DNA from: Thalia democratica
Taxonomy: Eukaryota
Direction: 5' to 3'
Assembly: GCA_965202585.1 (NCBI GenBank)
Contig: OZ241826.1
Coordinates: 85,808,001-85,872,000 of the forward strand
Length of the DNA: 64,000 nucleotides
Shown: positions 11,486 to 57,350 of the stretch, in pieces
How the letters are laid out: every line of letters starts with the position of its first letter
Position numbering within the stretch: position 1 is the stretch's first letter
The notes under the pieces: generated by a model
Database searches by the model: none
What the model was told of the DNA's origin: nothing
The model's input: only the letters and a program-made list of their open reading frames with translations
Translations under genes and position numbers: made by a program

Positions 11486-14400
11486 TTAGTAATTTTTTGT
11501 GACAAGGTCTTCATATGGACGGAATAAATTAACATGCTTTTCATAGTGTTTTCTAGTTTCTGTTGACAGATATTGCTGTTCGTTTGGAGACTTAACTTTT
11601 AGCTTTTGGTTAGTTTCCGTACCACAACTAAATTGCTGTTCAGTAACATCCGTTATTTTCGCGCTGTTCCTATTCTTTGTAACATCTTCATAACGCCTCT
11701 GCTTTGCAGGTGGAGTCATTTGATCGTAAGAAAACGTACTTTGTCCTGGGAAAATGTTACCTTGCGAACATTGTTGCATTAACGGGTTGAACTCGATTGA
11801 GGTGCTGTTAAGTCCAAAATTACGATTTAATGTTTCGAGATTGTAAAGGCTCTTTCTGATTGGACCACCAGTAATAACTTTTTTGCTCTGACTGGTTGCT
11901 GTCAGCATCGGAAAAGTTATTTGCTGATAATTGACAAAATTAGGAAGGCCACTAGAGGGCGTTGTTCGCTTCTTTGTCGTTGATTGGTCGTTAATTTTAT
12001 CATGTGTCTTCATATGGGACTTGAGGTTGTCCTTTCGGACGGAACTGTAGTCACAGTGGGGACATTTGTGGTCCTTTTTACCCAGATGAATGCGCATATG
12101 ACGATGAAAATGATATAGTCTGAAAAATTAACTTATCAAGTATTAAAATACAACGTTTTATTTTTTGTTAAAGTTCATAGTATTTTACTTAGTTTTTTAT
12201 ATGAATAAAAAAAACAATTTTTAAACAGTTAACCATGAATTACTACGATTAAGTATGTTTATAGTTAAAAGATTAAACAGTTTTTACCTTTTTATTCGTT
12301 TTTCACACAGTGGACACTTTATGTACATACTTTCGGGATCTCTGCCTCTCATTTCTTCTTTGACCTGATTAACTATCAATTCAGCCTGTTTTTCAGTAAC
12401 GATTATTTGATAATTTGTTGAAGATGTACTCCCCAGAGGTAAACTCGGATAACTCGACGGTTTGTAAGTTTTTGGTAGACTAATAGAAATTACATCTGAA
12501 GACTTGTTACTAATTGGAGTTCCCAAATTATTTGAATTTCTATCTGACGAACTAGTTTTATTTCTATTAGAGAAGTCTGCAGTCATAGCTTGTATGTGTT
12601 CGATTTCTTTTTTATTCTTCGTAGTTGGTGTAAATTTTGTACTTGTAGTTTTATTATGTTTATGATAAACTTTTTTTAATGAACTAAACAGTTCTTCCTG
12701 ACTAGACTTTTTGGGAATAGCTTTACCTCCAATGTTTGTAGTAGCATTACTTTTTGCGTTCATATTTGTCCCAAGTTTATGTTCAGATTGATAAAACCTG
12801 TTGTTTGTCTTGTTCCAAAGGTTAAACATGTTTTGGTTGCACTTAACATTCTGAAAGTTTTGTTGAGGTATTATATAGTCACTGAAATTTTGTTGACTAT
12901 GCATAAACCGTCTTTGTCTTAAGTTGTTTTGTGCCATCATGTATGCTGCATATATTAATTGTTGTCTTCTTTGATTATAGAAACTATTAAGATAAGCCCA
13001 TTTCAATTGTCTTTCGTACAAAGCTTGCATTCTTTCTAAACTGTTTGGTTCTTTGCTCATGTACAAAAACGGTTTAGCCAATGAAAACTGCTGTAATTCT
13101 TCTGTTCGCAAATAAAAATTGTATGTTTGTTGATAACTTTGTTGTTTTTGCTGTGTTTTTAGTAAGATTTTTCTTGCTTCATCTTTTGAAATATTTACGT
13201 GCTTCGTTGAAACAAATTTAGTTTGATCTGAAGTATAAAAAACCGCTAGTTTGTTGATATAATGTTTATTTTTTTACAGTATTTTGTACATTTTAACATG
13301 GGAAAAAGAAGACTCTTATAATTGCATTATAGAAAATAATAAAAACAACTTTTATTTTTTAGAATAATTAGTAACTTTAGTGAATTACTTAGGAACATAT
13401 TATATTGTATATTATATATTATATTATTTTTACTCTAACAAAATTATTAACGTAAGATAAACAAATTAAGACTTAAATATATTTATTTTATTGCTTGAAT
13501 TTATAAAAAAAAATTACAGCTAGAACATGTTTTAACTTTCTTTTTATTATTACACTGTAAACATTATCTTAAATGTAAAAATTAATTTAAAATTTAAAAA
13601 CAGTATCTTAACAGTATCTTCAGAGCTAAACTATTTCATTTAATTTTATATACAAATTACTGTACTCTAAAAAACAGAAATATTAAATGTTAACAAAAAT
13701 GTTAAGCGTTTATCTAACCTTGAAATTTGGGTGAAGCTTTTTTATCGTTGTCATTAATGATAGGTTTTTTCATCAGTTCTTTGTGTGTTAAGTTATTAAA
13801 GTTTAACTGTAAAACAAATTAAGTTTATTTTTTATTATTTAAGACCACTTGGTTTCTTAAATCATTAACAAACCTCTGCTACTGTTTAAGTTCTGCATTA
13901 AAATCACGTTTGCTTAAACTCTTAGAGTTACAATTAAAATTAAATTATTGTTTTTCTGAAATAAGAAAAACAACAAACCTTAGGTTCAATTTTAGTTTCG
14001 GTCTTTAATTGTTCCCGACTACATTTTGACGTCATTTCTATTTCCTTATTTGTGACGCAATTTTTTGATGACGTCACACTTTTGACTTCTGGCCTACTTA
14101 AAAAAGATCCCGTTTCAGAGATTTGATTTTCAGGTAAGGAAGTTTTATCTGAAAAACATTATGACGTAACTAATATATTTCGTTAAAATACTTCGTAAAA
14201 GTAATACATATTTTATTAAATATCGTCTAGTATATTAATTTGGTGTTTTCCAAATATTATTTTAAATGTCATTATTATCTTTAAAGTAGCCGAAGGTTTG
14301 ATTATAAACATTTCAAGTGGGATAAATACCCGTTCTTAAGATGTCGGGCCGAATGTTTACGTAAGTTTTTTTTTTTCTAATTCTCAAGTAAAATAGTGTA

Positions 14401-16437
14401 AAAAAAATAATTAAAATACTTTTAACTTCAAATAGAAAAAGCTAAAACAGAAACTTTATAAGCAGTGATATTTAACTTTGAAACAATGCTATTCTGAAAC
14501 AACAGTATTTTAGGAAAGTTTATAATAAATAAAAATATAATTCCAGAAACAATAATTCTTATAATAAACAACTGATTACTATAAACGTACTAAATTTATT
14601 AAATCAATTGCAATTAGTCAACTTAAAGTTTTCATTCTAGATGCTATATATTTTATCATTCAAAAAAATACTGTGATTCCAAAATAAAACAAAGTTTATA
14701 ATTAAGTCATTTAAATAAAATGAAAAATAACTTTATTTTCTGACAACACAATCTTTTTGTTAAATGTTACTGTTTTTATACAGTTCAAGTATTTTGAAGG
14801 TAATTAAAATGTATAACGGAAATACAAACATAGGTTATAAGCAAACACCTGGTAAAAATTTATTTGATGGGAAAAACAATTTAAAGCATCATTAACTACG
14901 TAATTTACAAATAAAATTAGCAAACGGGAGTTATGTTCCTAACTTTAAATTTTTAGATGCATTTATCTGACTTTTGTATCTACTTAAAAAGTGGTAAACA
15001 GTTTTGTACTAAAACTTTTACATAGTTAAACTAATGATTGTTTTGAAAAACGTAGAAATACATGTATACTTTTTTAAGTATTTTCAGGAAACTTAGAAAA
15101 AACATGAGAAACATTGTGTAATAAGCTTCGTTATTTTAAATTTAAAAGCTGCATACCTTAGCAATGATAAAATAACAACTTTAATATTTTCGTAAGTAGT
15201 CTGTTTATTAAACGGAGTTTTATGTTTTAAGTATAATTTTTTCTTTACTTATTTGTAAACCATTATAGTGTTTTGAAAACAATTAAAAACGCAATAACAT
15301 AAAAATATAAAAAAAAGCCGTTTTGAAAGTTTGATTGAAATATTTCAGCGCTTAGTGGAACATTTTTGTATACAAGTTATAAAAAACATCGGCCGGTACT
15401 ACATAGTTAAACCTTATTTTTCACATAGTTTTTTTTTTATAATTAGAACATTACAAATAAGTGCTTTTAGTAAACTAACTTAAATAAATATTTTTTACTG
15501 ATTTATATACTTTTAATATTTTTTAAAACAGCATAATTTTTTAATATACGACAACTCGTTAAATATAGAATATTGATTTGCACAGATAAAAATAATAAAG
15601 AAATGTCAAATATCTATTTTCCTCCCAGCAAACAAATGTCTGTAAATTAGAAGCAACTTTTATAAGGTGTCTCAAAAACTTATTTCATTGTCAATTTGTC
15701 TAACAAAGTACTTGTGAAATTTAGCTATGTAAGCCCTCGAGCTTAATTCAAGTTTTTTAAGAAATTTTAGCAAAGAAACTTATTTCATAAAACAAAGATT
15801 TTTACAGTTTACATATCTTCTTTTTTGAATTTTTAAGCTATAATTGAAAATCGTATCTTAAGTTTTTATTAAGAATCTTTGTTTAAAAAGATCTTTAGAA
15901 AAAATGTTTAAAATGTTGATTTATATTAAAAATATTGAAAATGACTGTTTTCGTTTCACTACAAAAACTTTATTTTTAGTAATAACTGCGAACTTTTTTA
16001 TAAACTTCTTCAACTCCCTTTCTTTAAAGTAAAATCTTAATATAAACTTTAAACAGTTCTTTAAAAAGTAATCTAAAAATAATGTAAAGTTAAAATTCCA
16101 AATACATTATTTTTAAGAAACTACATTATTTTCTTATACGGTAAATAAAATATATACTCGATAAGATTAACAAAAAATACTATAATCCATTTACAAGGAA
16201 TTTAAATAGAATTTTTTTAAACAAGGCTTACAAAATAAAAATAAGTTTAGTGAAAAATTTACCTTAAAAAAAAGATATATCTTTTTTTATTTAATAGGTT
16301 TATTTACCTGATAGCGAATTCTCGTTCAACTGTGACGTATAATGAGACAATTGATGGGGTAGATGTGACGTCATAATACAAAAATCCTGCATCAAATTTG
16401 GTATTTGTTTCGGTTGATCCTGCTTGAGTCTCGGCAT
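11486..16437 (-). CDS. ZF-B: two-finger C2H2 zinc-finger transcription factor, 653 aa; complement(join(11486..12119,12288..13227,13719..13806,13979..14148,16308..16437))
   Basis: All introns are GT-AG with compatible phases (1,0,1,2) and the frame is open. Finger 1 CPLCEKRIKR|LYHFHRHMRIH (C-x2-C-x12-H-x3-H, split by intron 4), linker LGKKD, finger 2 CPHCDYSSVRKDNLKSHMKTH. The tail contains LFRPY. Exons 1-3 were inferred from in-frame conservation across paralogues. Confidence 0.85.
14841..14910 (-). promoter_or_regulatory. Intron-1 element II in ZF-B
   Basis: Homologous to 1631-1700, about 700 bp before exon 2. Confidence 0.55.
15731..15744 (-). promoter_or_regulatory. Intron-1 element I (AAGCTCGAGGGCTT) in ZF-B
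   Basis: Exact 14-mer; no conserved reading frame or splice sites around it. Confidence 0.6.
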
Positions 16438-17761
16438 AACTAGTAAACTTTTTAGATAGACGCTATTAAAAAAAAACTTTATAAGAATAATCATTTACTA
16501 TCGAAGATCAAAACAACCAAAATATACCATGAATTTTGCTGAGTAATATAAAAAATGGCAAGCTACAGATGGTTTGTTTAACACTAAGCTTTGTTATTAG
16601 AGCTAAAAGAAATCTAAACAGTACCTATACTAGCAATTTAAAAGTAAACACTATTAAAAAAATATTGATTATTTTAATTTTAAAAGGTTTAAAATTTAGT
16701 TATTGAATATTAAAACTTCGAGTTACGCAAAAACTGAACATTTAAGTCAGCTAATGCTTGGTTAAAAAGTTCCAACTGAAATCTCAAGCGACAAACGATG
16801 TTAAAAATTTTGAGAGAACAAAAAAAAAAGCAAACTTCTTTTTGTTAGCTCTCTCTAGCACCATAAATGGCTAGAGTAGAAATTTATGTTATGGCCAAAC
16901 ATTATAGATTTTAATTAAAAGGTATGAAATAGTTTATTATAACATAAGCACTCTTCTATCTTTTTTAATAGTTTCTACACTATTTCTTTGAAATAAAATA
17001 AAAAAATAAATCACTAATAATAACAAACACTTATACATAGCTTAGTTATAATACGATTATAAAAACCCTTTCGTATTATTAATAAACTAAGCTAAAAAAT
17101 TAAATTGCTTTATTCTAAGCAAAAAAATAAACTTTAAGTAATGATGAACAAAATAATAGTTTTAAAAAGTTTAAACTGAAGCTTTATATAGATAGATAAA
17201 TATTAAGAACTTGTTTATTTAGTTAGTTTAATCCTTAAAATTCAATTATAAAATAGTTAACATACTCAATTAGCTTTTACGACTAATTTGTCTTATTTTA
17301 TTACTAGAAGCATTGAACCCCTAAATATTTTTTACTAACTATAATATTTATGAGCAATGATTTAAACAGAATCTAAAACTAATTATGACTTTTTCTAATA
17401 ACTTAAAAAAAAATGAATGTAGAAAATATTTTATTAAATCATTTATTTTACTTCTTTTGAGCTTTTAGTTCTTATAAACTTTACACTGTTAATTCATTGT
17501 TTATCTAATCGTCAATTGCAAATAACAAATAAATGCTTATGACAGTTTAGAAACTAGGTTGGTATCTGCTTAAGAACTGAAAACAGAAAAACAAGACTAA
17601 AATTTTATAGTAACTTAAATGTAAATTTTAAATCTAGTTAAATCTAGTAGTTCAAAAGTAAAATGAGTAATATCCTCAAAAATTCATTTAGAATAAACTA
17701 AGATTTAATTTCTTTATTACATACACTAACTAAAATATAAAGCAAAAGCTAGTTCAAAACA

Positions 17762-17800
17762 AAACGTAAACTAGCACCTCAGTGCTATTTGTCATTTATT
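17762..17800 (-). promoter_or_regulatory. Upstream conserved element with palindrome TAGCAC-CTCA-GTGCTA (ZF-B)
   Basis: Perfect 6-4-6 inverted repeat at 17772-17787 followed by TTTGTCATTT. Confidence 0.5.
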
Positions 17801-20800
17801 ACTAATTCTTACTGGTTAGGCACATAAACTGCTAATGTATGGTAAAATAGTTGCTCATTCTAAAACATACTATTTTAAATTTCAACCCTAAGACTGTTAC
17901 CATAATTTGTTAAAAATTTCATATTTCTATTTTAATTCATATTATTTCAAATACTCAAAACTCAAATATGCTTAAACAACTAATCTCTTTATTTGAATGA
18001 GATTTTACACGTCTCTAAAATAAATAAAATTTAAACATGGTTTACAGAAAAAATTAGTTTAAGCCAAAGAAACTATGTTTAAACATTAAATACACCTTTC
18101 GGTTCTTTGTTTTATAAAACATCTGCAAAAGAACACAACAGTTAATAATATGTTTTAAAACAAGTAACCTAGACTTCACTAATAATAAATTAATATATGC
18201 TTTTTTACTGTTTTTAAAATATATTTCTATTGTTAGAATGTGGTTTAAAGATTATCCCTTTTTAAAATCAAACTTCCTTAATTGATGTTTTATTTTTCAA
18301 GTCTTTTATATAGTTTATAGACCTATTGTTTAAGAGATTTCATACAATTTAGAAAAATATTAATCGCATAACACCAAACCGCTTATTACCAAACAAAACC
18401 GTTTTATTAATCTGTTTCCCTTTTAATGCTGTAACACTAAAAGTAAAGTGTGTTTATTTCCACTTATTTATTTGCTGTATATAATTTCAAGTTTTGTTAA
18501 GAATTTCAAAAATAATAGATAGAATAAATTTGAACGGAATGTTTTATTTAGAATTAATAAATTTATATAGTTTTTCTATTTAAATTTTTCACTTTATGTT
18601 TTATTTAAAATTATCAAAGCTCTACAAACGTTTTAGTATTATTTTTATTTTAATTTTTTGAATAATAAAAATCTAAGGAAATTTTGATTACATTGTTAAA
18701 AAAAATTTGTTGTATCACGTAAATTGACAAATTTAGTACGTGAGGTTTTTTTCTAAACAAAGTAAACCGCAGGCTATTCAAAATTTTACTTTTCGACTAA
18801 TTAAGAACGATTATAAGAATGCTATTGTTTAAAACCCGTAGCTTTTAGCAAAAAAACTAAAGATTATATTAATCAAAAAAAAAAAAACGTTATTTTTGTT
18901 TAGAACCCATTTTAATATTTTCACATTCAGTTGCAAAAATAAACGACGTTGAAAAAATTTGAGAATAGTTTGTTTATTGAAGATTTTTTTAATACCAAAT
19001 TAGAAGGTTTTTTTATAGTTTTAACATATTTTATTTACGCAGGTTTTCACACTTTATTAAAAGCTTTGCTTATTCTATTTGCAGAAAACAGCTGTTTTGA
19101 CAACTTAAAAGTTACAATAAGACAAAAAATTAAGTCAAGAAATTGTACAATTAATAAGATAAGTAAAATATTTAAAGGTACAGATTTTTAAAAACTTGAG
19201 TTATATTAGACTGAAGCTTCTAATAGCCAATCAAATATAGGTCGTTTAAAAAGTACACTACATTATCCTTATGATTTGATTAATCTTTATGGTTGCGAAC
19301 TAATAATACAATTCTTGATAAAACTAATTACAATTTCAAATGTTGATTACGTTACAACACAAAACAAATCAAGCATGTTCTAAAACAAAATGTAGTTTCA
19401 AACACCCGAATTTAGATTGTATCACCTTACGGGTAATACTTTTTCTATTTTGGTAGTGTTATAAGACCATGTTCAACACAAAAGGTAATTTTAAACAAGC
19501 TAAACTCAATATAGGTGGTTTATAATTTCGCATAAAAGTTGTAAACAAGACAAAAGGGCTGCAATTTGTTTATAGAATTTGTCAAATAACAAAGTTCAAA
19601 TTGTAATTTGCTGATGATTAATTTATAAATCCCTGTTTTATCTTTTATAAGAAATAAGTTTGTGACGAGAATACTTTAATTAAAATTACTTACCTTTAAT
19701 TAAAAACTCTAAAACATAAAAGTTGTTGACAACGACTTAGTTCTAATCTTGTTCGAATTAAGTTCCTGTAAATTTATATTTTGATAACTATTTATGTCAA
19801 GCTTAAATAAAGTTGGTCAAGTCTTTGTGTATATATATAACAAACAACCGTACAGCGCCATTTCACAAAAATTATTAGGTTGGATTATAAAATTATACAA
19901 AATTAATTTAATCATTTTAATCTTATATATTAATAACTTATTTAAACTTTTGTTTGTACGACATTTCAACACAAAGCCTTATAATAAGTTTATAAATTGT
20001 TTTTTTTTACTTAAAAGAGACAAAAACAAAAACTAATAGTGTACAAATAAAGTTTGCCAACAATATCTACACAAATTAATGTCAACACAAAAACTTTTAT
20101 AAAAAATTTACAAACTACAATCAGCTTTATCAAAAATTTATTTTTATTTTAAATACCGGTGTTTGTTAGGGAAATTTTCAAAAAAAGCTTTAAAGGTCAA
20201 TCACATCTTTTTTAGCCTACTTTTTTAGTTACTTTCGAGGTAAAATTAGCAAGTTGCAAACAAAGTTTGTCTAATAAAATGTTTGTTTCTTGCTTAAACT
20301 CAAGTAACTATTTTATTGTGTCGAAGAGTCATTAAAGAAATGATTTTTAAAGGTCTGTTTGAGATAGTATTGAAGATATAAATAAAATAAAATTCAAATA
20401 CTTTTACTATTTGATTAAAAAAAAAACAATACCCGAACTTTTTCTAATGAATAAAAAAAAACACTTAAAAATTTTACTTATTAGTTAAAATGGAGTGCAA
20501 TTCAAACTTTACAATTTTTTTACATTTTAATGTATAATTTTCATATAAGTACAATGTTAGTTGCTATCTTCAGTTTACAAAAAATGACTATCTTTTCAAT
20601 AAATTACCAAAGGCTATTTCTAAAAAATTTTTTTTGTAATTACGTGTACATATTCATTTTACTTTAAGGATTTTTAAAAACCTCAAGTCCTAAGATAAAG
20701 GCAATTAATTATTTATATTTTGTGGAAAAACAGGTGTTGCTACAAATTCTTTCCTAAAAATTATAATGGTGTGATAAATTTTATTACAGAAGATAAAACT

Positions 20801-23422
20801 TCCGTTATTGCATTTTTTAGGCTTTCCAATAAAAATTTGATAAATGTAAAATTTTGTAATTTAGTTTAAAAGGTTTTATAAAACGTTTTAAAATAAAATA
20901 GAAAGTAACAACCCAAAAACAAATCTTTTTTTTTTTTACATGATTACTTATTGTAAAATTAAATGTTTTTGTTATTATTTAAATATATTTTTAAACCAAC
21001 GCAGTTTATTAAACAAAGGTATAGTGATTATTTTATTTCAGATGTTGTTTTATGAAGTTTGATATTTTTAACAACTGTTTTAATGTATTTTTGCTATTTT
21101 AAATAAAAAACTATATGTTTGTGATGAATTTTATAGTTAAGTATCTACTAAAAAGACAAATATTCAGATCAAAGGTTTTAGACATATTATTATATATATT
21201 ATGCTTCAAGTCATTTAAATTAAAAAAAAATGTTTAAATATTAACTTGATTTGTATTATATTATAGAAGAATTAACCATTTTTATGGTTACATACTTTTG
21301 TTCTTTTTTTAACAAAATATATAGTAGGTCTGAAATATATATATTTTATTATTATCACAAATATTATCCTAAATTGCAATAACTAAACTTTTATTAATAA
21401 AAGCAAAAGTAACAAACAAACTTTAACGAGTTAGTTCATTAATGCTCTTTGCTTTGTGAGTGTTATACATTATCAAACCAAAAGGTAAAATTATAAATTT
21501 TAACAAGGTAACAAAAATCTCAGTTTATAAATAAGTCAAGGTAGACTGTCACTTTTAATAAACAAACTGTCACTTAGTCGTAAATATTTTGAGTTTTACA
21601 AATAAAATGTATCAAAAAAGCCGGTTAGTTCAAGCAATCAAGTTTTAAATGTTGATTTTTTTTTAATATTTTATTTAAAACATACAACAGTATTTTTATG
21701 TTTTTATTTAGCTCTAATACGTTAAAAAAAAATTATTAATATAAATTAACTAATAATGTTATAATGATTTAGATTTTTAAATCACTTTAAGTATGCCAAC
21801 ATTGTCTTGACTTTGCTTAATTGAAAATATAACAATAGGTTAAATAGGTATTTTTGATTAAAATGCTTGAAACTTGTTCGAATAGGTATAAACATACACA
21901 AAATAATAAAGATTCAAACCAAAAAACAAGCATCCAAAACCGTAAATAATGTTATATGTTTTAAAAGTTTTGAAAAACTCATAAAAATTTTTTACAGCTG
22001 TGAAGCTTAACGTCAGAACTCAAGTACAAATGCACTTAAAAAACAACTTATAACTAGTTGAAATACTAAGTTTAACCACGTTTGATCAATGAAGCCATAG
22101 GGCGTTGTAAAATAATATCAATTTAATATTTCATAGACAGTTTTATTTAATATAAATAAGTTTAAGGAGCATCTAAAACTACGACTTAAAAAAACATGAT
22201 CGATTGAATTTTTGCCACAAACATAATTTATATAAAGTATTTTAAAACTTTTGTCAACAGTTTTCAAGTTGTACAGTTACGGGTTATAACTTGAAATAGT
22301 TTGTACATTCAAATTAAAACAAATCAGTTTGTTTAAACATCTTTTAACGTTAGAATCAACAAAATTTATTTTCGTAAATTTTAGGAATAATTTTTTTTAG
22401 TTTATCAAACCTTTTATAGAAATTTTTACACTTTAAATTTATAATTAATAAAGAAGCAAAACCTTAAATATTCAAAAAATTCTCAACTTTTTTATAGATA
22501 TTTAAGTAAAAACTATTTTAAATATATGATCATTCTTAAAATTAATCAAAATTGAAAATACTAATTAAATTTTTATTTGAACTTAAAATTACCTGCTTTA
22601 GGTTTTTACAAAAAAAAGCTCAGTTGGTTTATTCTAAAAACGTTTTATAGTTAAAACCAACAAGTTAAATACCTTTTAAAACTTTTCATAGTTATTATAA
22701 GTTAATCAACATACGAGAGCAATAAAAATAAATACTATGTAGAGTTAAAAATATTTGTTTAAATCGTAACGAACCATTATATTTCTAAGAAAATTTTAAA
22801 AGTCATTAAACAGTTTTAAAACGGAGTAATTATTAAATTTCTTATTTGTGTAACAAGTTAAATAAACTGTTATAAAAAAATACACTTATAAAGTATATTG
22901 AAATACTTGGATGAGTTTTTAAAACTATATTTAGGTTTACAGTTTAAACTTTTAGTTATAAGTATAACGTTTTAGATAAAATCTACAACACTTTAATTTT
23001 AATAAGTTTATGATCATTATTGTTAGCTAACTTATCAAACAACAATGGTTTAAGTAAAAAAAAAACCAGAAAGAAAACAACAGTATTTCGGATTTTTTAT
23101 TAAAGTAAAAGTAAGTATTCAGTATACATGTTTATTTTTTAATAAACTTTAGAAAATATCACTTAGTTTGATGTTTGCATATTTGAATAACTTTCAAATC
23201 TCTTTATGAACACTAAAATAAATTTAAAATTAACTAAAAAAGAACTTTTACGGAAAACATTTTAAAGTATGTACTTAATTTACAGTACACATACAAACTT
23301 CAAAAAGTTGATTGCAGTAGTGTCAAAACGCACGTCGTAAGGTAAAACCAACTGATTAAATTAAAACTTTATCAACACAGCATAAGCAGTAAGTGGTATT
23401 AGATTAAAGCAATTTGCAAGTT

Positions 23423-26400
23423 TTAGTGCAGATAAGGTCTAAAAAGTTCAACCGGATCTTTCTTATCATGTATTGTTAAAGTTTCCTGTTTATTTGTTGC
23501 AAACTTATTTTCATTGCAAAAAGGTTCACATTTGGTTGACTCTTCAGCAATTTCTGATATTTTAGTTAAGGTTCCATTGATTGTTTGGTTTTTAACTTTA
23601 CGTCGCTTAGTAGATATTGAATCGGTTGAAAACGTATTTCCATACAAACCCGGGCACATTGGTGGGTAAAATCCATTAGAAGCGTAGTTGAGTGTATTAC
23701 CGTTCTGCTTAGTAGAATGGTGTCTTCTCATTTTCTCACTTTTTTGAAAGTTGTTACGGTTAGACCCATTTAGCATCGGTAAACTGAACTGCTGATGATT
23801 GAGAAACGTTGACAGATCACTAGTGGGCGTTGTTCGCTTCCTTGTTGTTGATTGGTCGTTATTTTTGTCATGGGTCTTCATATGGGATTTGAGGTTGTCT
23901 TTTCTGACGGAACTGTAGTCACAGTGAGGACATTTGTGGTCCTTTTTGCCCAGATGAATACGCATATGACGATGGAAATGATATAGTCTGAAAAAGATAA
24001 AAACACGTTTGACTTGGTGGTTTTTAAATAAGTATTAAAAAAATGAATAACAAAAACAATACTGATGGATGTAAACAACAACTTACTTTTACGAGAAAAC
24101 AGTTATTTTGTTTTAAAGTTTTATAAAGTTTAAAACTAAAAATTAACCTATATCAAGTTGTAAAATCTTAACAATACTTTTAATATTTTAGTTTCTCCTA
24201 TGTACAAAGTTGCTTATTTAAAAAATAAAAAAATTGCATTTTCAATTTTCTTAATTAATTTTTTGTACTAATTGTTATAACAAAACATTGATTCAAAAAG
24301 TTATACTGCTAAGATAAAAACAAAACAATTATTTGTATTAAACTTAGTTTTAAATTAAATGTAACAATATGAAAATAAATTTAAGCTAGAATTTTTGAGT
24401 TATAATTTTAAATTTTAATCTTAGATTTTTAAAATAAAAACCTATATATTGAAAACTTAAAACATATAAAAGTTTCCATTTATTTAACTTAAAAAAACTA
24501 GATTGAAAATCATACTGATTGTCTTGATTCTAAATACATTGATGTATCAAACCTTTTTATTCGTTTTTCACACAGTGGACATTTTATGTACATATTTTCA
24601 GGATCTCTGCCTCTCATTTCTTCTTTGACCTGATTAACTATCATTTCTGCTTGTTTTTCAGTTACAATGATCTGATTACTTGTTGAAGAAGATGAGTTAA
24701 TGTGATTAGTAGGTTTAAAGCGTTCTGTGACATTTGGTAGTCTAATTGAAATCACATTAGAAGAATTAATACTATACTGAGTTTTTGCTTGTTTTGATGT
24801 ACTAGCAGTTGAAGAAGGGTGCTTATTCTTTATGGCAAAACCATTGATAAGAGCTTGCATATGGTTTTTAATAATCTTTTTGTTAGTAGAAGAAGTAATT
24901 TGTATATCAGTATTATTGCCTACCGGTAGTTTATTAGTTTTCAAAAAGCTAAAAGTGTTTTTTGCCTTACTACAGTTTTTAAAACTATATCCTTTTTTAA
25001 TTTCTTTACTAGTTGTGTTGTTAAAATGTTTATTATTGTTGTGTATATTACAAAAGTTGTTGTAGTTATGACTTATATTTGGTTGATTAAGAAAAGTCCT
25101 TTGATTGTTGTTTATGGCATTACATCTTTTTTGTTGCATAAATCCGTTAGCAAAATGTTGCTGATGCTGTAGATTACTGTTGTATTTTAACTTATTCTGA
25201 GCAAATATGTAAGCAGCATATAGCATTTGTTGTCTTCTTTGATTGTAAAAATTATTGAGATAAACTAATCTCATTTGAGACTCGTACAAAGCTCGCATTC
25301 TTGGATTGGCTGAAGGAAACTGTTGCAAGTGATTCATTTGTTGATGGTAGCCATTTGTTTGTTCATTAATAACTGGTTTCTGTTGCATTTTTAGCCAGTT
25401 TTCAAGAATTTTTTCGTTTGATACGTTGTCAACTTCTGTTGAGTAAGTTCTTCTGAGATCTAAACGTTTTGTTACTTTAGACATCGATAATATTGATCAA
25501 TGCAAATTTTGCTAAACAGTTTTAAAGGTAAACTTTTAAGGCAAAAACGATAAAATATATGTCAAAAAAAATACAATTGCTTTATTACGTCATCAAAAAA
25601 GTAAAGTGCAGCAATATTTGCCAGGGAGATAAGATGTTTTGATGCAAATTATCGATTTATATTTGTTTAATAAACTGCCTAAAACTTTCCCGCGAATTTT
25701 GAAATATTACACTTAAACTGTAAACCTTATTAATCTGCTGAAATAAATGAAACTTATATTTTTTAATTAATTTTTGTCGATTTTTAAATAGAAACAAAAA
25801 ACCATTAAATACTCCCTTAACATCAAAACACTTAGAAAATATAAAACATCAAAATTCTCATCTAACCTTGAACTTCGGGTGTTTCTTTTATATCGTTGTC
25901 ATTACTGATAGCGTTTTTCATCACTTCTTTATGAGATAAGTTTTTCCAGTTTACCTAGAAAGGCAATAAAGTCGAATTTTAGGATAAAAAAGGGAGTTCA
26001 TTTAGTTGTCAAGGGCATAAAAAGTTTCCGTATAGTAATAGTTAAAAATTAAAGTTCTTTAATAAAACATTATTTTGACAATGCTTTAAAGCATTTTAAT
26101 GCTTTAAAAACAGTTAGTATTAATTAAAAAGTTTTATTAAAATATCTTTTTTATTTTTTATTTTAGAAATCAGTAGTTGAAGCTAACTGAAACTGCCTTC
26201 TATTTACAATTTTAAAATAGTTTAGTTCAAAATGATTGCAAAAAAAATAATTAAAATGAACCGATCGTTATAAAATCATAAAAAGTAAAGCTTGCTTAAA
26301 AACATAAACACCAAGGTTTATGATAAATTAAACATATACATTTTTTTTAAATCAACTAACACTTTATAGCTTTTACATACTATGTATAATGTGTAATTAT

Positions 26401-33700: not shown

Positions 33701-35296
33701 AACGATATTTAATGTAAAATATAAGCAATTTATTTTTCTAATATAAGTTAAATAGTTTTAGCTTTTAGTTTTCTAAAAACCGTTAATCTCATCAAACTTT
33801 GGAGAAAATTTTATTACTATTACTAAAGAATTTCTCCTAACATAGAAACAGCCAAATGATAAATTTAATTTTTTTTTGTTTCTCACTCCAAGGTTAGTTA
33901 GATAGTGTACATTAGACGGTTTGCAACTATTATACTACTTATGAACTTGCTTTTAATTTGATTAAACACCATGAAAATGATAAATAAACTGTTATGATTA
34001 ATTTGAGTTAAAATCACTTTTACTCAAACTTAAAACAGTTTATAAGTTTGCTTCAGTATAAATAAGTTAGAAAATTATTACATGAAAGTTATTATTTTTA
34101 ACATTTAAATTACTATTACAACTAAAAAAATTTTTTCTGTTATTACATTTTAATAATGGTAAAAATTAAATAGTTTAACTTTAACAAAAATGGTAAAGTA
34201 ACTTTACAGTATTTTCATAACTTTTATATTTTATATAGTTTTATAATTTTAATGAATGGCCTGTAACATTAATTGGCAAACATTATAAAACCTTTAAATG
34301 TCGTTTTCAAAGTTTAAGTTTTAAACATTTATGGTTAAACAAAAGGTAGTAACTTTTTTCTAAAAGCTTAGTAGTGCATGAAGATAATTTTGAAAGTAAT
34401 TAGGGTAGAACTTTATAAACGACTTTTGAAAAGCTAATGTGTTTACTACGGTAGTTAGTTCTGAATATTATTTTGTCATCAGTTAAATTTAGATCTGAAA
34501 TTTAAGCTATTGTCAAACCCCTTAAAAATAAAGGTTTCATCTTAATCTGTTTTAAATTTATCTAATTTTAAAGTTACTTGTTTATAAAATAATAATTTAT
34601 TGTGTTTTTATCTAAGAAATTCGTTAGTGCTTTCTACGTCATAATAACAAATCATAATTTTTCTGTTTACAAACATATAATTTTGAAACTCTTGCATAAA
34701 CCTTCTAAAATAGTAAAAAACTCATAAGGTTTTAGACAACCTACTTGTAATTATTACGATGATCTAAACTTTTTAAGTACAACTTAAACTAAAAGCTTCA
34801 TTTGAAAAAAACTTGTAAACATATCAATAGCAGATATCCTGATATACTAGATTTCTGTTGCTTAAATCGAACTGTATATACTTGGCAAGCTGTATGTCGT
34901 ACACAATTTAAGTATGATATTTTGATTGATCATTGCATTGAAAACTTGTTATATGCTTGAAGGTGTTACTTTTAAATGTTTTCTTATTTTTTATTACTAA
35001 TATTGATCACTAATACTGTTTTATTTATAACCTCTGATAATAAAATTATAGATAATATTTTTTAAATATCTTATTTTGGTTAAAAGAATTAATTTACTTC
35101 ATTATTTTATAATACTATGTATAAACTTTTATATATAATGATAGTTCTTTCAATAAATCGAGAATTTTTTTCTACTTTTTAGTACTTTTCTAACTGTAAC
35201 TAAATGTAAATGAGCTTTTAAATCAAGTTCAATTTACAGTTTAAACATTTGTTTCAAAAAAAAATTCCCTATTTTTATCAATTTTTTGATTGTTAG

Positions 35297-35357
35297 GTGG
35301 TTAATGATGCTTTAAATTATCTTTCCAAACAGAACATATTCTGACCAGGTGTTTGCT
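35297..35357 (+). promoter_or_regulatory. Orphan copy of intron element II with no recognisable exons nearby
   Basis: GTGGTTAATGATGCTTTAAATTATCTTTCC...GACCAGGTGTTTGCTA; a TTCCCACA lies at 35432. Confidence 0.5.
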
Positions 35358-38300: not shown

Positions 38301-41300
38301 TACAAACACTATTTTTATTAACAAAATATACTGCACTCATTAAAAAAAATAAACTTTTAAACTTGCATTGCATTAAGTTTTAAAGAAAATATCTAAACAA
38401 AACTGGCAATTCTATCAAGGAATTTATACAAGCGGTTAATAAAACATCTGTTAAATAGACTTAACTGTTATACAGTAACAAGCGTTACTGTATAAAAAAC
38501 AAAGTAAAAATATTAGTATAGTTTCTTGTGAGCACATTTTTCATTTACCCACTAAAATTAAAATCAAAATTGCTAATTAAATATGATTTAATATCAAATA
38601 TGTTATATTAAACCGCTAACTAACTACAAAATAATAATTCACAAATGCATAAAAGAATTGTCCATTCTTTAGAACAAAAACACTTGTGAATCATTTAGAA
38701 CTTAACATAACTTGTTGGACTGTAAAAAAATAAGGTATAATGTATACTTTTTATTAAATATAAACTTATTGTGAATGTCATTATAAACTTTTAACACTAT
38801 GATTGATAAATCAACTTGAAAAATAAGATGTCTTGTTTAAAAGTGTATGCTATTTACGTTTTTGTGAAACTATGGACATATAAAATAAAAAGTTAAAGTC
38901 GTTTTTAAAAATAGTTTTAATTTTATTAAAATAACAAAACGTTTTCATAAAATGTCTTAATTTTTAAGTTGTTCAACGTTTTTAAAGTTTTCATTATACT
39001 AATAAAATTTGAAATGTTTATCTTTTTTTAATGTACTTAATATACCGCTTGTTTGTTATCAAATTTACATATACAGTTCAAAAAAGTAAGTGACTATTGT
39101 GTTTCACAACATCATGTGTGTTTGAAACAAAATAATACTTTTTTTCTGCAAAATTTAGTAATTGGTTTATATCTTTTATTTGTTTACTATATCATGATTT
39201 AGTTTAAGGTACTTATAAAGACAGTTAATAGGAAAATAACATTTAAAACTTCCTAAAGTAACTTACTTAAAAAAATTGTCAGAATTTAACACTTTAATGA
39301 TTTTTGAACAAGGTAAATTATAGATTTAAGGTTTTTTGCTTTTTAATAATAGTTATAGATAAAATAGTTGACTGTACATTATAATAAACGATTATAATAA
39401 TTACACAACTTACTTTGTTTGATTTTTGTTTTTTAAGTACTTAAAATGTAGTTAATTTGAGCAATATGCTTTATTGTATTAATAAATCAATTGAAACTAT
39501 AACAAAGTTGAAATTTATTTAAAGCTACTGTTGGTTTTCAAATTTTACAACTTAATGCGTTTGCCCTTGACAAATTAACCTATCTTATTTCAGATCTAAC
39601 TTACGACTTGTATGACTAAACTAAATAGTTGACAGTCCAAGTCGGCAAACTAAAAATTTCTAAACTAAAAGTTAAAAGAAAGCGGCTGAAATATTGGTTT
39701 TACTAATTAATATATATATATTTCTATATTATAATACTACTGACAGTCTTAAATGGTATTTGTATAGCTTAATCAATAACATACTATTTAATCAATTATC
39801 AAAGAAACAAAAATAGAAACTTAAGTATTACGATTAATCTTTCTACTTTTAGAGTTTTTACGTGTACGTTTGATTTAAATGATACTTCCTTCGTTTTAAA
39901 TAATAGTTTCGAAAAAAAAACATCAAAACCTGAACAATTTTATTGCAATACTTATCAAAAAAATTTAAAACAAAGTTAATTTGCTAAAAACACTGTTACT
40001 TTTAAAAAATAATTACAGAATTCAATCATTTTGACACTTTTAAAAGGGCAAGTTTTTTTACCCGTAAGATAGTAATACAAATGGAATTCAAATTTTAAAT
40101 TACCAATTTGTTTTGCAACATGTATGATTTGTTATGTGTTGTAAACAAACATTAATTGTTTTTGTGAAAAGTTTGTATAAATGATTGAACGTACAAATAT
40201 CTAAAATCGCTTACGGATAATATCAGCTTCTTGAACGTTAAAGTAGTAATTTTCAATTCTTATTAACAAAATTAAACTGCTTTAACAATTGTGACTAATG
40301 ATTTCGATTACTTGCTCCTAGCTCAAAACTGCTTTAAAACATTTTAAAACTTTCATTTTGATAGATCAGCTTAAGTAAAACTTCATTCAAAATAATTAAA
40401 ATTAAAAATAAACTTAAAAAAACTTAATTTGCTTACTAAACAAATATGCAAGTTAACTTGCAAGTTCGTGCAAATTATTTCCATATTTTTCAAGCTACCC
40501 ATATTTATTACTCTAAACTAAGTAATAAATAAGAACTTATAAACATTTTGACTGGATAATTTACAATATGATTTGAAAAATCATAATTTTTAGCCTCAAA
40601 GATATACGAAAGCAAATAACTTAGCACCTTTTCAATTGACTTTAAATTAATCTTATTTAGGCTAATTAATAAAAACTAACGGTTCTGAGGAAACTTTTGT
40701 TGTTATGATAGGTCATAAAACATTAAGTTTATCATAATGTGTACAAATTCAAAAAGACTGTAAAGTTCAACTTTAAACATTCTGCAGAAACTTGTTTAAA
40801 ACAACGGAAATAATAGATTGCTTCTGCTATAAATCACTGTCCTTTTTTAAAAATATTTTACAGAACTTAATCATATGAACACTACTAAAAACGTAAAAGT
40901 TTTACCCGTAAGGTAACACAAACAGAATTGAGATGTTTAAAACAAGAACTTTTTTTTACGAAATTTTTGGTTTGATTTGTGTTGTAATGTAATAAAAAAC
41001 TTGGAACTGTAATTTGTTTTATCAAAAATTGTATTAATGGTTGGAATTTATTAAGGCTATTCAAGCCATATAATTCAGTATATTTTTTGAACGATCTATG
41101 TTTGTTAGATTACTCTAAGCTTTTGTCTAAAATAACTTAGTTTTCAAAGAGTCTCTTCTTTTAGATATCTTACTTATCTCAATAAACTAAACAAACTCTT
41201 AAGTCTTTTATTCTGTCTTATCGTAACTTTTAAGTTGTCAAAACAGTTTTTTTTCGGCAAATAAAATAAGCAAAGCTTTTGATAAAAGTATCAAAACCTG

Positions 41301-42454
41301 CGAAATTAGAAATTGGTAAATCTGTTAAAATCACTTCTAATTTAATACTAACAAATTTTTTTATAAACAAATTATTTTTTCATTTTTTCAGCGTCGGTTT
41401 TCTTTAACTAATAATTGTGAACATTTTAGAAAACAAAAACAACATTATTTTTGTTGATAAATTTTAATTTTTTAGGATAAGCTACGGGTGTTAAACAAAA
41501 GCATTCTCATGATCATTCTACAGTAGTTGAAAAGTAAAAGTCTGCGGTTTACTTTGTTAAGAAAAGTTCACATGTACTAAAAATGGTAATTTTATGAGAT
41601 ACCAGAAAGTTGTTTTAACAATGTAATTAAAACTTCTTTAGATTTTTATTATTAAATTAACAAAATTAAAAACAATATTAAAACGTCTGTAAACCGTTGA
41701 TAATATTAGATAAAATATTAAGTGAGACTTCTAATAGAAAAAGAATAAATTAATTAAACTAAATAAAAATTTTCCTTTAAAACTTATTTTAACTGTCCTT
41801 TGTAAAATTATATACTATAAAAATAAGTGGGAGGAAATAAACGCATTTTACATTTTAGTGTTACAGCTTTACAAGGGAAACAGTTTAAAACGTTTGTGTT
41901 TGGTAAGAAGTATTTATTGTTTTAAGCGATTTATAGTTTTCTCAATTTTAGAAAATTTGTTAAACAATAGGTCTATAAACTGTATACAAGACTTAATAAA
42001 AACATTAAAAAAGGAAGTTTGATTTAAATAAGGGATAATCGTTTAAACACACTTTAACAAAGAAGTAGATTAAAAAACAGTAAAAAAGAACATTCTAATT
42101 AAATTTAAAAGTCTAGAATTACTTATTTTAAAACATATTATATACTGTTGTGTACTTTTGCAGATGTTTTACTATAAAAGTTCCGAAAGGTTATTTTTAA
42201 TGTTTAAAAATAGTTGTAATTTTAGCTTACTTTTATATTTCTGTAAATAATTTTTCTTCATCCTAAAGACGTGTTAAAGCTCATTAAAATAAAGAAATTA
42301 GCTGTTTAAGCATACTTGTAATTTGAGTATTTAAAATGTTTACATATAGAAATATGATTATTATAACAAATTATGGTAACAGTCTTAGGGTTGAAATTTA
42401 AAATAGTATGTTTTAGAATAGCAGTGTATGTGTCTAACTAGTATAAATTAGTAA

Positions 42455-42495
42455 TAAATGACAAATAACACTGAGGTGCTAGTTTACGTTTTGTT
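42455..42495 (+). promoter_or_regulatory. Upstream conserved element TAACAC-TGAG-GTGCTA (ZF-D)
   Basis: Reverse-complement homologue of 17762-17800. Confidence 0.5.
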
Positions 42496-43638
42496 TTGAA
42501 TTAGCTTTTGCTTTATATTTTAGTTTGTCTATGTAATAAAGAAGAAAAGTTTTAGTTAATATAGAACGAATTTATAAGGGTATTGTTTATTTTAATTTTG
42601 AACTGTTAGATTGAAAATTTCGTTTAAGTTACTACAAAATTTTAGTTTTTTGTTTTTTACTATAACTAAAAGATTCATAAACAGATTACAATTTAATTTC
42701 CAAACTATTTTAAGCATTTATTTGTTATTTGCAATTGACGAATAAATAAAAAAATAATTAACAGTTTAAAACTTTTAAGAAAAAAAAGCTAAATAGAAGT
42801 AAAATAAAATGATTTAGTGAAGTATTTAAAAAAAATTTTTTGTCATTTAAGTTGTTAAATAAAGTCATAATTAGTTTAAGATTCTGTTTAAACCATTGCT
42901 AATTAATATTATAGTTAGCAAAAAACAATTAGGGTTCTATGCTTATAATAAAATGAGACAAAATAGTCGTAAAATCTAATTGAATATGTTAACTATCTAT
43001 ATTACCAGACTTTTAAGGACTAAATTAACCAAAAATAAACTAACTTTTATTGGAGAATTTTTATTTTTGCTAAATTAATCTATAATACTAAAGGGTTTTT
43101 AAAAACTTGTATCAAAACTGTTGAAACAGATAGAATAGTGCTTATGTTATAATAACCCATTTTATAGCAAAAATTCTAATTAAAATAAATAATTTGACCC
43201 ATAAAATAAATTTTTACTCTAGCCGCTTAAGGTGGTAAAGAAAGCTAACAAAAAAAAGGTTTCTTTTTTTTTATTTCTCCCAGATTTTGTAACGAATATT
43301 TGTCGTTTGAGTTTATCAGTTATAACTTTGTAACCAAACATAAGCAGACTTAAAAGTTCAAGCGTTTAGTAGTTTGAAGTTTTCATATAGAATGACAAAC
43401 TTTTATACTATTTATAACTAAAATAGTCATTGCTTTTATTTAAATTGCTAGTTTAGGTATTGTCTAAGTTTTTTTTTGCTTATATATAACAAAGCTTAAA
43501 GTTCAAATTAAAATTTGTAGTTTATCATTTGTATAATTTAATCAGCAAATGTTATGGTTTATTTTGGTTGTTTTGATATTTTTATATAAATTATTTTTCT
43601 AATTTTTTACTAGACTATATCAAAAAAAGTTATTAATT

Positions 43639-46600
43639 ATGCCGAGATTCAAGCAGGATCATCCTAAGCAAATACCAAATATGATGCAAAACTTTTGTGT
43701 TATGACATCAAATCTAGTCAATAAATCGCACCATAAGACATCACAATTGAAAGATTCTTCATCATCAGGTTAATAAATCTATTTAAAAAATAAAGGTGCA
43801 TCATTTATATTACGAAAATTCATCTAATAATTAACTTTAATTTAAATTAGTTAGTAAATACGACAATTGTTTATAATCATACTTTTCACTAAATATTTAT
43901 TTTATAAATTAGCCCTATTTGAAAATGTTTCCTTTGTATTAAATTTTCTTGTAAAGGCAGTTTGTTTTAGTAATTTTTGTTAATTTTATCGGGTATATAT
44001 TTTATTTTTCATGAAAAAAATAACGTAGTTACAAAAGTATTATAAACTTGAATTTTAATTTTTACCATTTTTTTAAAAATAACTTTTTAACGAACTGAAT
44101 AAAGTACATATTAAAATTTTATCTTTAAAAATGGGAGTTGAAGTAAACTTATATATAAGGTCGCAATTATTACTAAAAATAACATATTTGTAGTAAAAAC
44201 AAACACATTTATTTTGATTATAAAAAAAAATTAAAAATTTTTATTAGATTCGATACTTAAGATACGATTGACATAAATAGCTTAAAAAAAATCGAAAACT
44301 AACGAAAAAAAATGTTTATAAAATATAAAAAATTTCCTTATATGATATTAGTTTTTCTTGCTAAAACTTCTTAAAAAACTTTAAATTAAGCTCGAGGGCT
44401 TACATTACAAAATTTCACAACTACTTTTTTAGATAGATTACAAATGAAATAAGTTTTTGTGACACGTTATACAAGGTGCTTCTTATTTATAGACACTTGT
44501 TTGCTTGAAGCAAAATAGATATTTGAAAATTAATTATCATTTTTAATTGTGCGAATCAGTATGCTATATCTAAGTTGTCTTATAATAAATAATAAATTAT
44601 ATTAAAAGCATATAAATATGTAAGAGCTACTAATTTAACTCAATTCACTTAAAACTCTCAGTTTATATGTTTCAGTTATAAAAATAATAATGTGAAAAAC
44701 AAGATTTAGTTATGTAGTACAAGCTGATGTTTTGACTTGTATCCAGTATAAAAAATGTTTCATTACGCGCTGAAATCTTACAATCAAACTTTTGGAACAG
44801 CTTCCTATTTTTTTTGTTATTAATCGTTTTTACAACATTGTATTAGTTTTTAAATTAGATTTTTTTTTATAAAATACATATAATTCTTTTAATAAACAGA
44901 CTACTTATGAAAATAATGAGATTTTAAAAAAGTATACACGTCATTCTATGTTTTCAAAACGATCTTAAATTTAACTATGTAAAGTTTTAGAACAAAACTG
45001 TTAACGACTTTTAAAGCAGATAAGTTATGAAAGTCAAAAGTATAAAGTTAGGAACATAACTTCCATTTGCGCATTTTATTTGTAAATTAAGTGGTTAATG
45101 ATGCTTTAAATTGTCTTTCCTATCAATATAAGTTTTGTCCAGGTGTTTGCTTATAACCTTTTTTGTATTTCCGTTGAAAATTTAAATACCTTTAAAATAC
45201 TTGAACTGTATAAAAACAGTAAAATTTCACAAAAAGATTATTTTCTCACAAAATATAGTTATTTCTCGTTTAAATAAATGTTTTTAGCTGTAAACTTTGT
45301 TTTATTTTGGAAGCCCTAGTTATTTTGAAATTGTAATAACATCTAGAATAAAAACTTTAAGTACACTAACTAGAACAAAAAATATTTCATTAGTTCAAGT
45401 TTTAAACCTATTATTATAGACTTGCATTGTTTCAAAATTTAAGCTATTATCTCAGAAAATTTCTATTATAGCTTTTTATATTTTAAGCTACTAGTACTTT
45501 AATATTTTTCTAAAACGCTTTTCTCGAAGCTGAAAAAAAAAACTTATGCAAACAATTTCAATTCGGCTTATTTTCTCAAGAACGGGTATTTATATCACTT
45601 GAAATGTTTATAATCAAACCTTCGGCTTTTTTAAAAATCATATTGACACTTAAAATAATATTTGGAAAATACTAAGTTACTATAAAAGACGATATTTAAA
45701 AAATATTTTACGAAGTACTTTAAGGTAATGTTTTATGTACGTCATAATATTCATTAGATAAAATTTCCTCACCTGAAAATCAAATCTCTGAAACGGGATT
45801 TTTTTCAAGTGCAACTGAAATCGAAAGTGTGACGTCATCAAGCAATTGCGTAACAAAGAAAGAAATAGAAATGACGTCAAAATGTAGTCAGGAACATTTA
45901 AAGAAGGAAACTAAATTTGAATCTAAGGTTTGTTGTTTTTTTTTTTTCTTTAAAAAAGAATGAGTTTATTTTTTATTAAAAAACTAAGCGTTTCAGCGAA
46001 TGTATTTGTAATTGCTAGCAAAGTTTAATCAGTAGAATTGGTTTGTTAATGCTTAAAAAACCAAAATGGTCATAATAGTTAACTTACTAGGTTTTACAGT
46101 TAAACTTGAAACTCTTATCGCACAAAGAACTGATGAAAAAACCTAGCATTCACCCCAACGATAAAAAAAATACACCTAAATTTCAAGGTAAGATAAACTT
46201 TTAGTATTTTTTGTAAGATTTAAAACTATTCTGTATTCAATACAGTAGTTTGAATTAAGAAAAAATAAATAACTTAGCTCTAAATATAGGTTAATATTTT
46301 TAATTTTTAAGTTAATTTTTCTGTTTAAGATAATGTTTACAGTGTTATAATAAACAAATTAAAAAATGGTGTAAAAAAAAAAACATTAAACCAACAAACT
46401 AGAGGTATATAAAACATTTCAGATCAAACAAGTTTTGTTTCAACAAAAAGCGTAAGTATTTCAAAGGATGAAGCGAGTAAAAGCTCACTAAAAAGACAGC
46501 AAAAACAACAAAGTTATCAACAAACATTCGATTATAACTTGCCAACCAATCAACTACAGCAGTTTTTATTGACTAACCCGTTTTTGTACATGAGCAAAGA

Positions 46601-48195
46601 AATAAACAACGTTGCAAGAATAAAGGCCTTGTACGAGAATCAAATGAAATGGGCTTGTCTAAATAACTTTTACAATCAAAGAAGACAACAATTGATGTAT
46701 GCATCACATATGATTACTCGAAACAATTTAAAACAGAAAGGGTTTATGCATTATCGACAAAATTTTACTGACTGCATGATACCTCAACACAACTTTAATA
46801 ATGTTAAGCGCAATCAAAACATGTTCAACCTTTGCAACAAGGCAAACAACAAGTTTAATCAATTTAAACATAAAAATGGAACAACTAACAAAGTAAGGAG
46901 TAATGTCACTACAAACATTAAAGTTAATGCTTTGAACAAAAATCCTAGCAAGGAAAATTTATTAAATTCATTACAACAAGCTCTTAATAAACATAAGAAG
47001 CTTACAAAAACAAATATTAATGGTTTAAAATGTACACCAACTACGAACGATAAAAAAGAAATTGAACATATACAAGCTATGATTGCAAACTTTTCTAATA
47101 AAAATGAAACTAGTTCGTCAACCAAAGATACTTCAAATAGTCTGGGAACTCTTCCAATTAATAACATTTCTTCAGATGTAATTTCTATCAGTCTACAAGA
47201 AACTTACAAATCATCAAGTTATCCAAATTTACCTCAGGGAAGTATGTCTTCAATAAGCCATCAGATTATTGTTACTGAAAAGCAGGCAGAAATGATAGTC
47301 AATCAGGTCAAAGAAAAAATGAGAGGCAGAGATCCTGAAAATATGTACATAAAATGTCCACTATGTAAAAAACGTATAAAAAGGTAAAAACTGTATAATC
47401 TATCAAACTTAAAACATACTAAATCGTAACACTTCATGATTAACTATTTAAAAATTAAACTTTAGTTTTTAACTAAATTCCAAAGTTTAATCAATAAAAA
47501 CTTAACATTAAATAATACGTTGTATTATAATACTTGAAAAATTCAATTTTTGCAGATTGTACCATTTCCATCGTCATATGCGTATTCACCTGGGTAAAAA
47601 GGACCACAAATGTCCCCACTGTGACTACAGTTCCGTCAGAAAGGACAATTTTAAGTCACATATGAAGACCCACGAGAAAAATAACGACCAATCAACAACG
47701 AGGAAGCGAACAACGCCCACTAGTGATCTTCTTAATTCTGTCAATTATCAGCAAACTACTTATCCGAGGCTGACAGCAGCCAGTCAGAGGACAAAAGTTA
47801 TTAATGGTGGTCCAATAAGAAAGAGCCTTTACAATCTCGAAACACTAAAAAGTAATTTTGGACATAACCACACTTCAATCGAGTTCGACCACTCAATGCA
47901 ACAATGTTTACAAGGGAACATTTTCTTAGGGCAAAGTACGTTTTCTTACGAACAAATGGCTCCACCTACGAAGCAGAGGCGTTATGAATATGTTACAACG
48001 AATAAGAACAGCGCAAAAATAACGGATATTACTGAACATCAGTTTAGTTGTAGTATGAAAACTAACCAAAATCTAAAAGATAAGTCTGCACACAAACAGC
48101 AAAACATATCAACAGAAACTAGAAAACGCAATGAAAAGCATGGTAATTTATTCTGCCCATACGAAGAATTTTTCACAAAAAATACTATTATTTAA
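43639..48195 (+). CDS. ZF-D: two-finger C2H2 zinc-finger transcription factor, 662 aa; join(43639..43768,45758..45927,46100..46187,46423..47383,47556..48195)
   Basis: GT-AG introns with phases 1,0,1,2 and an open frame. Exon 1 MPRFKQDHPKQIPNMMQNFCVMTS..., exon 3 LNLKLLSHKELMKK... Fingers CPLCKKRIKR|LYHFHRHMRIH and CPHCDYSSVRKDNFKSHMKTH. The tail has LFCPY. Closest paralogue of ZF-B (inverted duplicate). AATAAA overlaps the stop codon. Confidence 0.85.
44388..44401 (+). promoter_or_regulatory. Intron-1 element I (AAGCTCGAGGGCTT) in ZF-D
   Basis: Exact 14-mer. Confidence 0.6.
45088..45152 (+). promoter_or_regulatory. Intron-1 element II in ZF-D
   Basis: Homologous to 1631-1700, about 600 bp before exon 2. 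Confidence 0.55.
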
Positions 48196-57200: not shown

Positions 57201-57350
57201 ATACAACTAAAAATGCTCTAGGAAATACTGCAACTAAAAATAATAAAAAAGGTATTGAAAATATAAAAGGTATAATTGCTGATTTCTCTAAGAAAAAGAA
57301 AAAAGTTAGTTAAGTAACTACACAGAAAAAAGTAAAAAAAAGGTTTTCCA

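Follow-up and report, generated by a model that had tools for sequence, protein, structure and literature searches.

Groucho/TLE co-repressors are recruited by transcription factors through four-residue motifs, namely WRPW in Hairy/HES, WRPY in Runx, FRPW in Huckebein and FKPY in Brinker and Elbow. The Groucho/TLE consensus has been given as [WF]RP[WY], the form used by Copley (PMC4943189), and mutations in WRPW of a HES1 peptide abolished the pull-down of TLE1-4 (preprint, PMC13061025). Here we analysed a stretch of 64,000 nucleotides from Thalia democratica (contig OZ241826.1, positions 85,808,001 to 85,872,000; hereafter the window), which holds one zinc-finger gene in four copies: B and C on the minus strand, D and the broken copy psi2 on the plus strand. 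B and C carry FRPY close to the C-terminus, which fits this consensus, and D carries FCPY at the same place. We propose that B, C and D are paralogues of a tunicate-specific family of two-finger transcription factors, that FRPY may dock Groucho/TLE and that the tag of D may be weakened, and we give this reading a probability of about one half. Both Groucho/TLE as the partner of FRPY and the loss or weakening of Groucho binding in D are what we infer from the sequences.

An earlier note on this DNA had placed FRPY in B and C and FCPY in D; when the tetrapeptides were re-read in the sequence, its coordinates and the TGC codon of D proved exact (Table 1). The tails around the motif had been called otherwise unalignable, which is wrong: those of B and C align at 31–32% identity with several small islands, and the tblastn alignment continues through to the motif. 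For psi2 the note had read ICRY. These letters do stand at that place, but as the frame-shifted remnant of a dead gene, whose large and last exons contain stops and frameshifts and in which a deletion has hit the motif itself. The distance from motif to stop is 8–10 residues in B and D. When the tetrapeptides are compared with [WF][RK]P[WY], FRPY of B and C fits and FCPY of D does not.

A word search with the last exon of B returned 18 open reading frames from marine metagenome assemblies, and an exhaustive profile search added P0058, P0170 and P0074, the last a protein of 513 aa. Twelve relatives extend to the C-terminus, and all of these have [LI]FRPY in frame; in P0022, P0024, P0028, P0030 and P0031 the finger frame is ended by a shift of +/-1, and motif and stop are intact in the shifted frame. 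Altogether, the motif is found at the homologous place in 17 of the 17 relatives that reach this point in DNA or protein, from at least five clades. Its Arg codon varies among the relatives (CGT, CGC, CGG or AGA), and conservation is therefore at the level of the protein and not of the DNA. When 11 complete tails are aligned, 8 of the 153 columns beyond the linker are invariant; four of these adjoin one another and spell FRPY, and no other invariant columns in the tail form a run (shuffle P = 0.0005). This invariance persists despite a nonsynonymous divergence (dN) of 0.68 between the tails of B and C. AlphaFold2, run on the alignment, gives the tail a predicted local distance difference test score (pLDDT) below 50 and no secondary structure, with a small rise exactly at residues 191–199, which contain the motif; the tail carrying FRPY is thus predicted to be disordered. 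Judged from its sequence record, FRPY is a short linear motif under purifying selection, because it is kept in 17 of 17 relatives, is encoded by varied Arg codons and forms the sole invariant block of a tail whose flanks have diverged. A degenerate DNA pattern of the B/D motif region, searched against the metagenome contigs, gave two chance bacterial matches only.

In five of the 15 metagenomic relatives, frame-shifting runs of A (A3–A10) lie 5–25 codons upstream of the motif (loci L009, L010, L011, L012 and L013, which are the relatives P0030, P0031, P0028, P0022 and P0024). These shifted frames suggest that finger frames which are otherwise open have lost the tag repeatedly. Birth-and-death decay together with a search bias to long open frames can account for them, as can slippage or assembly errors in A-runs; a real route to untagged competitors is less likely.

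Two canonical C2H2 fingers with invariant recognition residues are present in B, C and D, as in a sequence-specific transcription factor. Profile (HMMER) and word searches place these fingers in a tunicate family, whose members include Ciona intestinalis LOC104266396 (1182 aa), Styela clava LOC120341096 (1518 aa), a Clavelina lepadiformis protein of 1559 aa and proteins of ~900 aa from large eukaryotic contigs. The same searches and an alignment of the core find all parts of the family core in the window genes, that is, a helix, DPENMYI, CPxC..KRIKRLYHFxRHMRIH, a linker and CPxCxYxSVRKDNLKSHMKTH. After splicing, recognition positions -1, 2, 3 and 6 read R,Y,H,R in finger 1 and R,D,N,S in finger 2 of B, C and D, exactly as noted earlier. 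The same residues are constant throughout the family, including Ciona, Styela and Clavelina; hence the claim of identical helices holds for the three copies, but it describes a family-wide tunicate trait and so is no mark of a designed pair. Scans of Pfam and the ESM Atlas returned generic C2H2 families only, with a weak match to DUF7838 below its cut-off, and a literature search with the finger peptide RKDNLKSH gave no match.

Within the family, FRPY marks a subfamily of short proteins (~500–550 aa) made up of this cluster, the metagenomic relatives and the GC-rich P0074. The latter (L006, MEL6741121.1) is an intronless protein of 513 aa that ends in IFRPYSMET; its deposition under a metagenome-assembled genome of Planctomycetota probably reflects the mis-binning of a eukaryotic contig. 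Two further motif-like sequences, YRPW in Ciona and FKPF in Styela, were set aside, as both lie within chance expectation by our own estimate. Neither eh1 nor CtBP motifs were found in B, C or D. In the wider family, P0123 and P0195 carry a CtBP-type PIDLS in the tail after the same two fingers, which hints that branches of the family use different co-repressor tags, although a single occurrence can be chance.

The history of D was read from its relation to B. In the tree, B and P0017 group together with D as their sister (support 99/92), and D therefore predates the split from the species that bears P0017. The synonymous divergence (dS) between B and D is 0.35 and their finger introns are 73% identical, and the duplication is therefore old. 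Between B and D, dN/dS rises from 0.056 in the core to 0.54 in the N-terminal part and 0.72 in the tail. When C serves as the outgroup, 35 replacements are private to D and 34 to B, and private changes in the core are as many in B as in D. The block upstream of D is conserved with that of B. Intact splice sites, the conserved upstream block, the low dN/dS of the core and a rate equal to that of B indicate that D has been kept as a gene; by these measures it is a maintained gene that evolves no faster than B. That D is a decaying gene was rejected for the bulk of its history on the grounds of core constraint and rate, and a very recent loss of constraint may have occurred.

Among the window copies and the relatives, D alone has Cys in the motif. 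Its codon TGC is a single C-to-T change, at a CpG, from the CGC of P0017, the orthologue of B; B itself has CGT. CpG hypermutability was considered as the cause and finds little support, with an observed-to-expected CpG ratio of 0.9 in the window and 0.7–0.85 in the coding sequences. Further private changes of D at otherwise invariant sites are Leu-to-Phe in finger 2 (helix position +4), Asp-to-Glu following the last His and Glu-to-Lys twice, just before the fingers and in finger 1. A search for an orthologue of D found none, its closest relative, P0017, grouping with B. Three marine metatranscriptome runs contain 5–7% of the sampled words of the last exon of D, too few to tell D from the finger region of its relatives.

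Synonymous divergence in the finger-coding DNA was compared over 12002-12316 (B), 23870-24581 (C) and 47355-47673 (D). For B and C it is low in this core (dS 0.41) compared with the rest of the gene (1.2–1.9); for B and D the core dS is 0.64, above the B–C core value. This pattern points to gene conversion in the finger region or to constraint on the synonymous sites there.

A mechanism can be proposed for these genes. As the DNA-reading residues never vary, all family members should bind the same target sites. In the short subfamily, the [LI]FRPY island of the disordered C-terminal tail would dock into the WD40 pore of Groucho/TLE, and FRPY proteins would thereby act as repressors. In D, a single C-to-T change that turns Arg into Cys puts the tag outside the known consensus, and docking is probably weakened or abolished; if FRPY occupies the same pocket as WRPW, the replacement of Arg by Cys should weaken binding. 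Each residue of FRPY occurs in some motif linked to Groucho in the literature, and FRPY is C-terminal, in predicted disorder and preceded by a hydrophobic residue at -1. The earlier note had proposed B and C as Groucho-dependent repressors and D as a factor that binds the same sites without recruiting Groucho. This stands as far as FRPY is a selected C-terminal motif on a zinc-finger protein that agrees with [WF]RP[WY], and as far as only D lies outside the consensus in an intact gene with a constrained DNA-binding core; no sign of selection for the Arg-to-Cys change was seen.

Several observations weigh against this mechanism. FKPY of Xenopus Znf703, a predicted Groucho recruiter, is dispensable for repression, and the motif is also dispensable for the zebrafish interaction with Groucho, which calls for caution in motif-based inference (PMC6547707). 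WRPY binds more weakly than WRPW (PMC13043292), and by analogy the F...Y combination may be weak in binding. Our literature search found no link between FRPY and Groucho, and a WRPW-type motif is missing from the C-terminus of the long orthologues in Ciona, Styela and Clavelina. Furthermore, the B–D tail is nearly neutral at dN/dS 0.72, so that one further replacement in D needs no selection. The population view of the Cys is swamped by paralogues: contigs of four runs, taken on D at 80% likeness, include hundreds of paralogous ones (361 in run X1), which obscure position 48154.

The selection on FRPY may also concern a partner other than Groucho, for instance as the C-terminal half of a PY-type nuclear import signal or as a docking site that is phosphorylated on its Tyr. 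PY-type import signals follow [RKH]-x2-5-PY within a basic disordered stretch. Indeed, the motif ends in PY and follows a basic stretch in B and D (RKHYEKH and RKRNEKH), with a His five residues before PY in both, but in the C clade and in P0074 none of the residues 2–5 positions before PY is basic, and an invariant Phe and an Arg next to Pro are demanded by the Groucho consensus, not by the import signal. Regarding phosphotyrosine, the terminal Tyr of Runx WRPY is under tyrosine phosphorylation control (PMC13043292). We regard a non-Groucho partner as rather unlikely. Still less do we favour an error of assembly, or a rare allele of the sequenced individual, behind the TGC codon of an otherwise FRPY-bearing D. 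TGC is one transition from CGC at a CpG, and only 68–74% of the sampled 31-mers of the last exon of D occur in runs X1 and X2, so haplotypes differ; however, its other private changes at family-invariant sites, Leu-to-Phe and the two Glu-to-Lys, mark D as a distinct, diverged copy, and no N or other sign of poor assembly is seen there. This explanation is very unlikely.

That B, C and D form an evolved repressor/anti-repressor set, as the earlier note had it, would mean that D was selected to hold the shared sites without Groucho and thus to antagonise B and C. The identical recognition residues of D, its intact promoter block and constrained core, its standing as the only copy with a non-consensus tag, and the tag lying out of frame in five of 15 metagenomic relatives, which would fit recurrent production of tag-less competitors, would all agree with such a role. 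Yet the change shows no sign of selection, being one transition within a tail that is nearly neutral, in a gene that evolves at the rate of B; the search for an orthologue, by which persistence could be tested, found none; and the frameshifted relatives can be decaying copies in a family that has pseudogenes such as psi2. We consider a selected set improbable, and an anti-repressor role of D is speculative. In a broader form of this idea, a family with a frozen DNA-reading code would diversify only via its co-repressor tag, giving competing tagged and untagged binders of the same sites. FRPY is kept in most short paralogues, replaced by FCPY in D and out of frame in a third of the metagenomic relatives; the long canonical orthologues have no tag and another branch has PIDLS. 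We see this as an outside chance. Altogether, D is most likely a paralogue whose co-repressor tag has been weakened, not a copy that evolved as an anti-repressor, and its Cys is possibly a polymorphism or the first step of decay.

The features of the window are collected in Table 1. The window contains no N and is AT-rich, with a GC content of 0.20–0.30 in 2-kb windows and 23% overall. The small 5' coding exon and the canonical GT-AG introns of B, C and D were recognised by comparing the copies, and in the spliced models of all three the helix of finger 1 is interrupted by a phase-2 intron. B (10500-16500, minus strand) and D (43200-49200, plus strand) form an inverted segmental duplication of at least 6 kb, 70–81% identical with introns, flanks and other non-coding DNA included.

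Table 1. Coordinates of the gene copies, their motifs and upstream blocks in the window.
Feature	Position	Strand	Remarks
Gene B	11486..13773	-	542 aa, intact; GT-AG model, Pfam C2H2
Gene B coding exons	13773-13719, 13227-12288, 12119-11486	-	
Gene B finger 1	12316-12288 + 12119-12086	-	phase-2 intron between
Gene B finger 2	12064-12002	-	
FRPY of B	11513..11524	-	TTC CGT CCA TAT; stop 8 residues on
Block upstream of B	14027..14175	-	kept in C and D; two TGACGTCA palindromes, at 14027 and 14069
Gene C	23423..25921	-	513 aa, intact; GT-AG gene model
Gene C coding exons	25921-25867, 25474-24553, 23987-23423	-	acceptor of the second exon uncertain
Gene C finger 2	23932-23870	-	
FRPY of C	23432..23443	-	TTT AGA CCT TAT; stop 2 residues on
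Matching upstream block before D	45739..45879	+	TGACGTCA at 45830 and 45872
Gene D	46133..48195	+	551 aa, intact; GT-AG gene model
Gene D coding exons	46133-46187, 46423-47383, 47556-48195	+	
Gene D finger 2	47611-47673	+	Phe, not Leu, at helix position +4
FCPY of D	48151..48162	+	TTC TGC CCA TAC; Cys codon TGC at 48154-48156
psi2	56147..58340	+	dead copy within the P0018 clade; ATG exon interrupted by a stop, other lesions downstream

The conserved block upstream of B is a probable promoter. Ten copies of the palindrome TGACGTCA, which is a site of the CRE/ATF type, are present in the window (841, 3220, 14027, 14069, 16366, 26580, 27995, 30711, 45830 and 45872), against ~0.25 copies expected from base composition. 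Each of the conserved blocks before B and D contains two of these copies, and a single one lies upstream of C. Two short remnants, at ~1600-1720 (plus strand) and 35300-35340 (minus strand), share SKHLV...(R/W)KDNLKHH followed by a stop; they resemble finger helices, yet lie outside the family of B, C and D, and may be the other 'ZF' or 'psi' loci of the earlier note. Contigs of runs X1 and X3 with at least 80% likeness to 46400-48300 number in the hundreds and pile up on the finger region, where the summed depth is ~6000–10000 compared with ~45–80 per contig. Beyond the four copies in the window, the source organism probably has many more members of the family.

In summary, our analysis points to transcription factors of a new, uncharacterised family that carry a motif of the WRPW class, with a natural variant at position 2; for this motif the Groucho reading is plausible. 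If FRPY docks Groucho, a mechanism can be predicted for a tunicate-restricted zinc-finger family that has expanded locally, namely repression at one shared DNA motif; FRPY then joins the working variants of the WRPW class, and D becomes a natural Arg-to-Cys test of motif position 2. D and the frameshifted relatives would also offer a handle on whether paralogues of the same specificity are tuned by gain or loss of a four-residue tag. Should FRPY prove not to be a Groucho ligand, it would remain an orphan motif under strong selection.

The closest relatives of the window genes are the Ciona, Styela and Clavelina proteins, which share a core of ~70 residues (pre-finger helix, DPENMYI, two fingers and linker) at ~75–85% identity. 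They differ in being 1182–1559 aa long and in having no C-terminal [WF][RK]P[WY], whereas the window genes belong to a short, multi-copy subfamily with His for Gln in finger 1 and an LGKKDH linker. In common with WRPW of Hairy/HES and VWRPY of Runx, the motif described here is an aromatic-Arg-Pro-aromatic sequence that follows a hydrophobic residue in the disordered tail of a DNA-binding factor, at or close to its C-terminus. The end of gene C, FRPYLH, is comparable with the C-terminus of HES1, WRPWRN. Here, however, the motif accompanies two C2H2 fingers and not a basic helix-loop-helix or Runt domain, it combines Phe at position 1 with Tyr at position 4, a combination that the literature search did not find, and in the B/D clade it is followed by 8–10 residues. 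Huckebein with FRPW, and Brinker and the NET proteins Elbow/Noc/Znf703 with FKPY, are unrelated proteins with unrelated fingers, and their motifs are internal. They resemble B and C in carrying a Phe-first motif on a transcription factor, in several cases of the C2H2 type, and FRPY differs from FKPY only in having Arg for Lys.

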